Below, piece by piece: positions 14,301-17,031 of a stretch of DNA of 64,000 nucleotides. This stretch comes from Styela clava. Its lineage: Eukaryota. Below the pieces are notes generated by a model, which was not told where the DNA came from, ran no database searches, and saw only the letters and a program-made list of their open reading frames with translations. Each line of letters starts with the position of its first letter. Within the stretch, counting starts at the first letter, position 1. Location of the stretch: positions 20,770,001 to 20,834,000 of the forward strand of contig NC_135250.1 in NCBI RefSeq assembly GCF_964204865.1. The letters run 5' to 3'. The translations under genes and the position numbers were made by a program.

Positions 14301-17031
14301 GTTGGCATATTGAAGTTTGATATTTTAAATTGAAGTTGTATTTTATGCTTATTTATTTCTGATTGGTAGAAAAAGAAAAGTTCATTTCTAAATACTTTTT
14401 CTGAAATTCTTGGTAAGTTTACATTTTTATTCGTTTTACCGTAAGCACACGATGCTCCTTTCCAACCCGAGTCACACATACATTGACTTCCGCCACGGCA
14501 ATCCCCATGCCCGGTGCATCTTATCTTACATAGTCTGAGTAAAATAAAAATTCGAATTGAAATTACATTCCCATGAACCGATTACAAATATCCAACTGAT
14601 GAGAAACAATGCGCGGCTCGTTCGAACTATTTTTGTTTCTTTTAACTGACAATCCACAAAAACTGTGCCACGGCGGAAAATTAAAGCAATTCAATGGATT
14701 TCAACTACAACTATAGTATAAAATATGAAATAATACTGTTCAAAATCTTTCAAAAAGTTTTATAAAATATGTTACTTAAATTATAAAATAAACTTACTGG
14801 TTTAGCCTGTAAAAAAAATCAAAGAGAAATATTGTTAGTAAAATGTTCTGGAAGCAACAAATCAATTAATTCATGTGTGTTCATCGTTTTTATTTGCCAT
14901 AATATACTACAAATTTTAGGAAGAATAAATGAAGAATATAGGAAGAATAAAGATTACCCTCGGTGCGACATTACTATATACTAGGAACTTTACGCTTTCT
15001 GAAATTTTGTTTGTCAAATTAGTTTGAAATGAAAATGGCGAACTATTTCATAAAAGACATAAATGATCTTAGACTATTTTTTTGGTTCACTTTATTGTAA
15101 GTTAGAATTTGAAATTTAACTTAAATAACTATCTACAGCATAGTATGTTTTACATTGAAAATGACTGCAAAAGCAAACTAGAGCTAAAATAAATTAAAAC
15201 AACTGTATCTTCAAATTTATTACATAAAAATAATCATGTAGAATAAATTCTGAAAGTGGTTTTTACTCACGCAAAATTTGAAACACTGAAAGAGTAGAAA
15301 TAATTTATTATTAAGTGATTATTAACAAAGTAGATGCTGTTTAATATTCTGTCTTCTTTTAATATGTAAAATCAGTATAAATACAATTAAGGAGATATGA
15401 AAATATTGCTTTTTCAGATTTGGATAATTCAAACGGCTCACAGTAGATATGTGAAATTCGAGGAAAATTGTGCTGAATACTGTTCTGCGGTTTGGTTCTG
15501 GAATACCGATTCTTAATTTTAACTTTGTTTTATGCTGATGTAAACCAACGTCCGCTGCATCACAACAAAACCTAATTATTGCTGTACTATTATTTTATCA
15601 ATGATGCCTTATGTATATTTAAGAAAAGAGAAAAGACATAAAACATCAATTTGAAATCATATGAAACTGTATTCTCATTTACACAGTCAATTCTAGGATA
15701 CCAAAAAAGTAAAAATATTAAATACTGAAATCTCATAGAAATTAGGTTCCAAAACTCCATCAGACATTTTCAGGCATAACAGACTTTTCAATAATGAATG
15801 ATTTTGTTATGTGAAGTATCAGCCATTATTTTACCATTATTTAGAATATGAAACTTACGCTGTCACACTGTAAAAAATAACAAAAGATAATTTTAGTCAG
15901 TAAAATATTTGAAAGTGAAATTCATTAAATTTATATGTGTTGTAGCTTTTTTATTTGGTTCAATGTCACAAACTTTTTTTCATTTCATGCGAAATTTTGT
16001 AGGTATGACCTCAGTTTACTACAAATTGAAATGAAAGGAAGGTTGATTGATAGATTTTGTATTAATCAGCATAAATGATATCTTCAATTCAAAAATGCTA
16101 TGCTATACATGACTTGACATCTAAAAATTAGCTAAAATACATATTATGTTACTGAAACATGATGAAAATTACTTTCCAGAGTTACATGGCAATTGCAGAC
16201 ATTTTAATTAATATATGTATTTGACTTTTTTTTTCGGTAGTTGTAAAAAGTCCAATTTTATTTCGTTGAAACATGGTTCCAGATTTTGCAGTTCCTCATG
16301 GGAAGACATAAAACCTATAAAATCCAAGTCCGAATGTTAAACAGAAAAATGTGTACTCACGCTTTCTTTGCGCTGAAGAAATAGAACATAAAATGGAAAC
16401 AATTACATATAGGGACACGCCTGTCCAGGAAATCGGACAAAAAGATAAATCACTTAGGATAAGCCATTGGTTTATATTATTCCTCTAAAATCTCAAAAAT
16501 GTTTCATAAAACTTTCCCATCCAGATTTTACTGTTCTTTATGGGAAGACATAAAGCCTATAAAAATCCAAGTCCGAATGTTAAACAGAAAAATATGTACT
16601 CACAGTGTCGCGACGCTGAAGAAATATAGGACATAAAATAGAAACAATTAGGAAATTGAACAGAAGGATACAAACAGAACAGATACAAACAGAAAGATAC
16701 AAAGCCCTACAAATCACAAAAATATTTGCTGAAACTTCTCGTAGTTTTCATTTAATTCCAAGGGGATTGCGTTTGGAGTGAATATATATATATATATATA
16801 TACATAATATTCACCCTTCACTTAGACCGTATTTTCGGATTGGAATTAATTAGATCCATATTGCATGGTTTCGTAGAATTTTTAATGTTCTTACTTCTCT
16901 AATGAGACTGATATTATTAAATAGAATACAATTAAATACAAAATAATATCATCTTACAACCACGCGTCAGACTGATCCACATGCATCGACAAGATGACGA
17001 CGAGCACGGTTAAAATCAATATTGCTTTCAT
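2227..17031 (-). CDS. Secreted multi-EGF protein gene: signal peptide, microexon-encoded helix, 17 EGF modules, Cys-rich module, thyroglobulin type-1 domain, Cys-rich module; final exon downstream of 2227 unresolved
   Basis: Exons read with GT-AG and consistent phase: 16958-17031; microexons 16604-16615, 16361-16372, 15859-15867, 15271-15285, 14798-14806; EGF 14440-14534; cbEGF 13123-13245, 12679-12801, 11773-11895, 11333-11455, 10663-10785, 10202-10324, 9765-9881, 9022-9135, 8547-8663, 8037-8153, 7468-7590; EGF 7165-7260, 5883-5973; cbEGF 5282-5412, 4998-5117, 4028-4150; then 3260-3427, 2475-2651, 2227-2388. Confidence 0.85.
2475..2651 (-). CDS. Thyroglobulin type-1 domain exon
   Basis: PC...[32 protein letters not shown]...C matches the Tg1 consensus (C..G.Y...QC....CWCV...G..I.GT). 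Confidence 0.88.
3260..3427 (-). CDS. Cys-rich module copy 1 (correct frame is absent from the ORF track)
   Basis: Phase-1 reading [56 protein letters not shown]; ttttag acceptor, G|gtgtgg donor. Confidence 0.85.
4028..7260 (-). CDS. Two plain EGF modules followed by three cbEGF modules (exons 7165-7260, 5883-5973, 5282-5412, 4998-5117, 4028-4150)
   Basis: [31 protein letters not shown]; [33 protein letters not shown]; [11 protein letters not shown]...; [11 protein letters not shown]...; [12 protein letters not shown]...; splice phases are consistent. Confidence 0.9.
6248..7044 (-). mobile_element. Non-autonomous hAT (Charlie/Buster-like) element, copy A
   Basis: TIRs cagtggtcgacaaact / agtttgccgacccctc; imperfect 8-bp TSD ccgtatgt/ccacatgt; transposase C-terminal remnant [11 protein letters not shown]; homologous to 60470-61261. 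Confidence 0.85.
7468..13245 (-). CDS. Run of 11 single-exon calcium-binding EGF modules (phase 1-1, 114-123 nt each)
   Basis: Each exon begins D-x-[DN]-E-C and contains C-x-N-x-x-G-x-[FY]-x-C-x-C, e.g. [41 protein letters not shown] and [41 protein letters not shown]. Confidence 0.92.
12035..12057 (-). pseudogene. Truncated cbEGF exon remnant DVNECIL*
   Basis: Same ~280 nt upstream intron and acceptor as 13918-14200, but only the first codons of the exon survive. Confidence 0.7.
13820..13917 (-). pseudogene. Decayed cbEGF exon (or alternative terminal exon) ending in a stop codon
   Basis: ttgcaattag|[32 protein letters not shown]; sixth Cys and donor are missing. Confidence 0.7.
14440..14534 (-). 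CDS. First EGF exon (tenascin-like EGF) [31 protein letters not shown]
   Basis: ttttactcag acceptor, G|gtaaaa donor; six-Cys EGF with CxCxxGWxGxxC. Confidence 0.85.
14798..14806 (-). CDS. Microexon 5 (9 nt, gctaaacca; LNQ)
   Basis: poly-T tract acag|gctaaacca|gtaagttt; phase 2-2; joins the phase-2 acceptor of the first EGF exon. Confidence 0.75.
15271..15285 (-). CDS. Microexon 4 (15 nt, tgtttcaaattttgc; VSNFA)
   Basis: ttctactctttcag|tgtttcaaattttgc|gtgagtaa; phase 2-2. Confidence 0.75.
15859..15867 (-). CDS. Microexon 3 (9 nt, tgtgacagc; VTA)
   Basis: ttattttttacag|tgtgacagc|gtaagttt; phase 2-2. Confidence 0.75.
16361..16372 (-). CDS. Microexon 2 (12 nt, cgcaaagaaagc; AKKA)
   Basis: tatttcttcag|cgcaaagaaagc|gtgagtac; phase 2-2. 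Confidence 0.75.
16604..16615 (-). CDS. Microexon 1 (12 nt, cgtcgcgacact; VATL)
   Basis: tatttcttcag|cgtcgcgacact|gtgagtac; phase 2-2, in frame with the signal exon. Confidence 0.75.
16958..17031 (-). CDS. First coding exon: signal peptide [24 protein letters not shown], phase-2 donor
   Basis: ATG in caaaaatATG context; basic n-region, hydrophobic core and S-x-A cleavage motif; donor TT|gtaaga. Confidence 0.85.

Follow-up and report, generated by a model that had tools for sequence, protein, structure and literature searches.

The micro-exon genes (MEGs) of schistosomes carry 10–20 microexons of 6–81 bp that make up most of their coding sequence, and their alternative splicing is documented (PMC10526429). 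Some products, those of MEG-24 and MEG-27 as well as MEG-14, form amphipathic helices that bind membranes (PMC10526429). The nearest formal analogue within chordates of the locus considered here is fast skeletal troponin T (TNNT3), where exons 4–8 are five small alternatively spliced exons that encode the N-terminal variable region (PMC2447309). We analyzed a stretch of 64,000 nt of the genome of the tunicate Styela clava (contig NC_135250.1), hereafter the window, whose minus strand carries five exons of 9–15 nt at the 5′ end of a gene encoding a secreted protein with calcium-binding EGF (cbEGF) repeats. Five consecutive coding exons of this size are a rare run in chordates. The same species produces clavanins and styelins, small prepropeptides in which a helical peptide of hydrophobic or cationic character comes after the signal peptide. 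The five microexons exist and sit together in the public gene model. The best explanation of the whole, to which we give a probability of about 0.72, is a real array of constitutive type that encodes the mature N-terminal tip of the protein.

The five microexons lie between a longer first exon, which encodes the signal peptide, and the first EGF exon (table 1). All have a length that is a multiple of three and are symmetric, in phase 2-2. At the acceptor side every one has a pyrimidine tract ending in CAG, and at the donor side GTGAGT or GTAAGT. The splice signals are near consensus, and the introns across the array measure 231–573 nt. Exon 1 ends in ..TGG TT before its GTAAGA donor. Its signal peptide consists of MK, a hydrophobic core of 12 residues, and ..SDA, and the stretch encoded by the microexons, about 21 residues long (FVATLAKKAVTAVSNFALNQ), comes directly after the predicted cleavage site ..SDA/WF. 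Together the microexons account for 57 of about 2,457 coding bases (about 2%). The other exons are ordinary ones of EGF type, 93–170 nt in length. The original prediction, made from the letters of the window, had described the coordinates, lengths, phases, and splice signals of this region, and all those it stated are exact in the sequence.

Table 1. Exons and other features of the Styela clava cbEGF gene, in window coordinates.
Feature	Position	Strand	Length	Content	Splice signals	Remarks
Exon 1	17031-16958	minus		ATG at 17031; signal peptide, W, and 2 bases of the next codon (phase 2)	donor GTAAGA	
Tandem duplication	16650-16278	minus		contains microexons 1 and 2		copies 16650-16520 and 16405-16278
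Microexon 1	16615-16604	minus	12 nt	..F VAT L..	acceptor TTCTTCAG; donor GTGAGTAC	residues in XP_039274779.1
Microexon 2	16372-16361	minus	12 nt	..L AKK A..	acceptor TTCTTCAG; donor GTGAGTAC	tandem duplicate of microexon 1; in XP_039274779.1
Microexon 3	15867-15859	minus	9 nt	..A VT A..	acceptor TTTTTTACAG; donor GTAAGT	in XP_039274779.1
Microexon 4	15285-15271	minus	15 nt	..A VSNF A..	acceptor CTCTTTCAG; donor GTGAGT	in XP_039274779.1
Microexon 5	14806-14798	minus	9 nt	..A LN Q..	TACTAAC branch-point-like motif; T8-ACAG acceptor; donor GTAAGT	in XP_039274779.1
First EGF exon	14534-14440	minus		Pfam EGF_Teneurin/EGF_2	phase 2 in, phase 1 out	residues 45-75 of XP_039274779.1
Rest of gene	13246-1611	minus		about 15 cbEGF/EGF exons (phase 1-1), 9-Cys module, thyroglobulin type-1, second 9-Cys module, tail		
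First 9-Cys module	3427-3260	minus		no Pfam family		
Thyroglobulin type-1 exon	2652-2476	minus		thyroglobulin type-1		between the two 9-Cys modules
Second 9-Cys module	about 2401-2200	minus		no Pfam family		
Last coding exon	1700-1611	minus		short tail		

The gene was identified in public data by searching its exons one by one against a representative protein library. The second match of an unnamed exon with nine cysteines (9-Cys; window 3261-3425, minus strand) is XP_039274779.1, annotated as "fibrillin-2-like isoform X2 [Styela clava]" and 818 aa long. Its first 75 residues correspond to exon 1 (residues 1–25), the five microexons, and the EGF exon with a single substitution, M16V in the signal peptide. 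Each exon of the protein in turn can be placed on the window, as far as the last coding exon, apart from differences in the cbEGF exons described below. Over about 727 residues, the window and XP_039274779.1 show about six real amino-acid differences, none of them in microexon-encoded residues. The protein therefore comes from another individual or assembly, and the peptide encoded by the microexons is identical in two individuals. The microexons proposed in a secreted multi-EGF protein are thus genuine coding exons of a public model. Conversely, gene finders had been expected to miss them, and the NCBI RefSeq model already contains all five. A RefSeq model with five exons of 9–15 nt is very unlikely to be ab initio, and we infer that transcript support stands behind XP_039274779.1. 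We found no paper on Styela microexons or on the gene of XP_039274779.1.

We compared the array with the number of sites expected by chance, scanning for YAG followed by 3–18 nt and GTRAGT with an upstream tract of at least 70% pyrimidine. Five strong sites, all of them multiples of three, fall in the span of 2,423 nt that separates exon 1 from the EGF exon. Across 5,000 first-order Markov simulations that kept the dinucleotide frequencies of the span, the expectation was 0.031 sites and the maximum two. Elsewhere in the window, 122.8 kb of strand yielded two weaker sites, neither of which is a multiple of three. A chance origin of the array is excluded.

Part of the array was made by duplication. 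Microexons 1 and 2 lie in the two copies of a block of about 130 nt with a spacing of 243 nt. The intron flanks of these copies differ at 11 of 118 positions (about 91% identity), whereas 7 of the 12 exon bases differ (Fisher P = 1.6e-4; binomial 3e-5). The two microexons arose by tandem duplication, and the exon bases then changed much faster than their flanks. In one reading, divergence of the exon was driven, so that a repeated tetrapeptide turned into VATL and AKKA. In the other, the flanks were held constant because of the splice signals in them. Both imply function. When exon 1 and the duplicated block were used as DNA queries against the 377-Mb genome of the species, they found only themselves. 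This uniqueness points to a local duplication and not to a dispersed repeat or an introner family. The two 9-nt microexons were also considered as an older duplicate pair. This is unsupported, as self-blastn at E < 0.1 returned only the pair of microexons 1 and 2.

The tip peptide of Styela (22-mer, WFVATLAKKAVTAVSNFALNQL) is hydrophobic, with a mean Eisenberg value of 0.32, and carries a net charge of +2. A single-sequence AlphaFold2 model predicts a helix over residues 20–47, with a predicted local distance difference test (pLDDT) score of about 50 at the N-terminus and a mean of 35. For comparison, we examined LOC100185993 of Ciona intestinalis (XP_078485436.1, 1007 aa), which has a C-terminal 9Cys-Tg1-9Cys arrangement like that of Styela, with 48% identity. 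For this C-terminal region, XP_078485436.1 and XP_039274779.1 are each the other's only strong match, LOC100185993 being the orthologue of the Styela gene. The two proteins also share cbEGF arrays and a signal peptide ending in ..DA, followed by a hydrophobic peptide that begins with an aromatic residue. The signal peptide of Ciona (MKLFSLILVTAVLIGTMAPGTDA) resembles that of Styela, ends in ..TDA, and is followed by FFSSIGNFFANAGKAIWQAGG (FFSSIGNFFANAGKAIWQAGGDVVEIIADDVF). The Ciona tip differs in being longer and strongly amphipathic: its first 21 residues have a hydrophobic moment of 0.47 (P < 0.0002 against shuffles). It is followed by an additional Cys-containing region with a CCGGW motif, of which no trace was found in the Styela window. 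This orthologue group therefore has, immediately behind the signal peptide, a fast-evolving peptide of hydrophobic or amphipathic character. The older Ciona RefSeq models XP_026690224/5 have an implausible N-terminus that starts within the cbEGF array. XP_078485436.1, which is newer, extends them by the signal peptide, the amphipathic peptide, and about 340 residues. For some time, annotation had overlooked the 5′ end of the Ciona orthologue.

In the mechanism that we propose, splicing would join the five microexons to one another, with the signal-peptide exon before them and the first EGF exon after them, and they would encode the mature N-terminus left after cleavage. Exons of 9–15 bases leave no space for exonic enhancers, so that recognition must lie in intronic signals. 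These would be the long pyrimidine tracts, the CAG acceptors, the GTRAGT donors perfectly matched to U1, and the TACTAAC-like branch site before microexon 5, and the short introns would permit intron definition. Inclusion is probably largely constitutive, as splice signals of this strength suggest. The intron between microexons 1 and 2 shows no unusual RNA structure (z = 0.33), and no UGC-type motif of neural microexons was seen by eye upstream of the acceptors. The peptide would form a hydrophobic helix at the tip of an EGF rod. By analogy with the strongly amphipathic counterpart in the orthologue, this suggests a fast-evolving tip that may contact membranes or partner proteins.

Several points weigh against this interpretation. 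The inclusion of the microexons rests on the RefSeq model XP_039274779.1, and the cleavage site of the signal peptide was judged by the −3/−1 rule only. The hydrophobic moment of the Styela tip is 0.25 at 100 degrees, a value reached by 17–18% of shuffles (P = 0.18), and the AlphaFold2 confidence at the N-terminus is low enough to count as weak support for helicity. The N-terminal regions of Styela and Ciona align only weakly (local P about 0.05), although conservation is good in the remainder of the protein, and a function for the tip is something that we infer. The amphipathic helix initially proposed is thus retained in part. A helix is plausible from the low-confidence model and the amphipathic counterpart in Ciona, whereas the amphipathicity of the Styela tip does not stand out from composition-matched shuffles. 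A tip barely alignable between the two species and without significant amphipathicity in Styela is also what would be expected if real constitutive microexons encoded a loosely constrained linker or pro-segment between the signal-peptidase site and the first EGF domain, the array being a by-product of local duplication and of an intron-rich structure that serves no specific function. A cluster of 12-nt candidates elsewhere in the genome, described below, suggests that such arrays are tolerated. We nevertheless regard such a neutral origin as doubtful, because the orthologue retains an aromatic-initiated hydrophobic or amphipathic peptide at exactly the same position, because changes at 7 of 12 exon positions against about 9% in the flanks are not predicted by neutral drift, and because the frame is still intact and all five microexons still have a strong splice site on either side. 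It is far less credible that the sites are pseudo-exons in a chance arrangement, left unused while exon 1 is joined straight to the EGF exon. This direct splice would indeed be in frame (TT/A = Leu), but the five sites stand against 0.031 expected, each has a length divisible by three and an open frame in the phase that is needed, and the public protein model includes every one of them.

The original prediction had gone further and seen in the array a MEG-like cassette that diversifies a recognition or membrane-active tip by splicing. If the five microexons were skipped in combinations, the N-terminus could take as many as 32 forms. Skipping in frame is structurally permitted, as all 32 combinations are in frame and free of stops. 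In addition, at four of the six junctions the codon is CTN or GCN and thus four-fold degenerate, which fixes the junction residue whatever follows. The duplicated exon pair has outpaced its flanks in divergence, as has been described for schistosome MEGs (PMC4350168), and the label X2 denotes a locus with more than one annotated isoform. However, X2, the sole isoform compared, keeps all five microexons, so that isoform X1 cannot differ from it by adding any. The three cbEGF exons of the window without a counterpart in X2 (13975-13820, which is degenerate, 12802-12683, and 11896-11774) are the likelier isoform or assembly difference. The splice signals are near consensus, as for constitutive exons, the peptide is the same in two individuals, the microexons represent only about 2% of the coding sequence, and no paralogues were found by the DNA search of the genome or among proteins of 450–1431 aa. 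A cassette of this kind is therefore rather improbable, and splice diversification is unlikely. The same holds for its most specific form, quite unlikely in our view, in which tissue- or individual-specific combinatorial skipping would place up to 32 different N-terminal helices on one EGF stalk for use in recognition or defense. Under such skipping, tandem duplication and accelerated exon divergence would supply new modules. A role of the tip in immunity or allorecognition is speculation.

The likeness to schistosome MEGs lies in a signal peptide on a longer first exon followed by very short symmetric exons whose lengths are multiples of three, in introns whose size can be compared with the 0.1–5 kb of MEG introns, and in growth by duplication. 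Unlike MEGs, which encode small secreted proteins, the Styela gene encodes a large EGF-repeat protein, in which the five microexons contribute 19–21 of 818 residues. It belongs to another phylum, has no sequence relation to MEGs, and is not part of a multigene family: no other protein of 450–1431 aa sharing the Styela N-terminus was found, and in the DNA search of the 377-Mb genome exon 1 and the duplicated block each occurred only once. With a microexon share of 57 of about 2,457 coding bases, the description as a MEG-like system cannot be upheld. The report on TNNT3 (PMC2447309) cites a 1985 paper by Breitbart et al. on combinatorial splicing. The TNNT3 gene shares with the Styela gene its chordate origin and five consecutive small exons near the 5′ end. 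It differs in that these encode an intracellular, acidic segment of a muscle protein, with proven alternative splicing and with neither signal peptide nor EGF stalk. Given TNNT3 exons 4–8, combinatorial cassettes of small exons as such are not new in chordates. As for the tunicate antimicrobial peptides, the Ciona tip resembles them in composition, whereas the Styela tip, with its charge of +2 and nonsignificant moment, sits on an EGF protein of 800 residues. Finally, the long cbEGF arrays of a secreted protein recall fibrillin and LTBP. However, no match to the TB domain (8-Cys, PF00683) was found in XP_039274779.1 or XP_078485436.1, and the C-terminus consists here of thyroglobulin-1 and the unnamed 9-Cys module. 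In the absence of TB domains, the protein is not a true fibrillin, and its RefSeq name reflects EGF similarity only.

As it stands, the locus is a gene-structure curiosity and not a new system. It nonetheless provides a clean, annotated tunicate example of how such an array is formed, an exon having been duplicated together with its splice signals before the exon alone changed fast, and of an array that is tolerated where introns are short and splice sites nearly perfect. A further point of interest is a testable, fast-evolving, predicted helical tip on an otherwise conserved protein of EGF matrix type, at a position common to the Ciona orthologue. Were skipping to prove true, splice diversification in the style of MEGs would extend to chordates.

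Other short candidates were noted in the window and in the genome. Upstream of the gene, the minus strand contains two short AG...GTGAG candidates, at 19177-19164 (14 nt, not a multiple of three) and at 18823-18806 (18 nt). An open reading frame starting at 18893 (MKHILVLRSF) is unconvincing as a signal peptide. The two candidates are probably noise. Genome-wide, the pattern TTTTYAG-N(9-15)-GTRAGT shows no global excess, with 581 matches against 1,281 for a reversed control. A tight cluster of 12-nt microexon candidates was observed on the minus strand at C1:924604-928143, 971112-972231, and 1008113, that is, at about 0.92–1.01 Mb. Their flanks are alike (TTTTYAG, 12 nt, GGTAAGT), and the 12-mers are related but variable. 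Comparison of this cluster with the five microexons revealed no similarity. The Styela genome may tolerate microexon arrays unusually well.

Downstream of the array, the cbEGF repeats of the fibrillin-2-like protein match EGF_CA over 12 stretches and cEGF over nine. A pair of cbEGF exons is duplicated in tandem on the minus strand with a period of about 1.35 kb, 13246-13124 and 12802-12683 corresponding to 11896-11774 and 11456-11334. From these, isoform X2 takes only the first exon of unit 1 (13246-13124) and the second of unit 2 (11456-11334), a mismatch that reflects either assemblies polymorphic in copy number or the skipping of exons. On the same strand, 13975-13820 and 12151-12035 are remnants of degenerate exons. 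The 9-Cys module, of about 50 residues, follows the pattern W-T-x3-G-C-x-C-x-F/Y-D-x3-R-x-D-C-A-C-C-x2-G-G-C-Q-C...C-V-x-C-G. It was found in 128 representative clusters (E ≤ 1e-3), in proteins of differing architecture from amphioxus, hemichordates, brachiopods, and molluscs, where it mostly forms two tandem copies at the C-terminus. Just past the 3′ end of the EGF gene, on the plus strand, positions 100-285 of the window form an exon that encodes a glutathione S-transferase C-terminal domain (GST_C_3, E = 9e-9).

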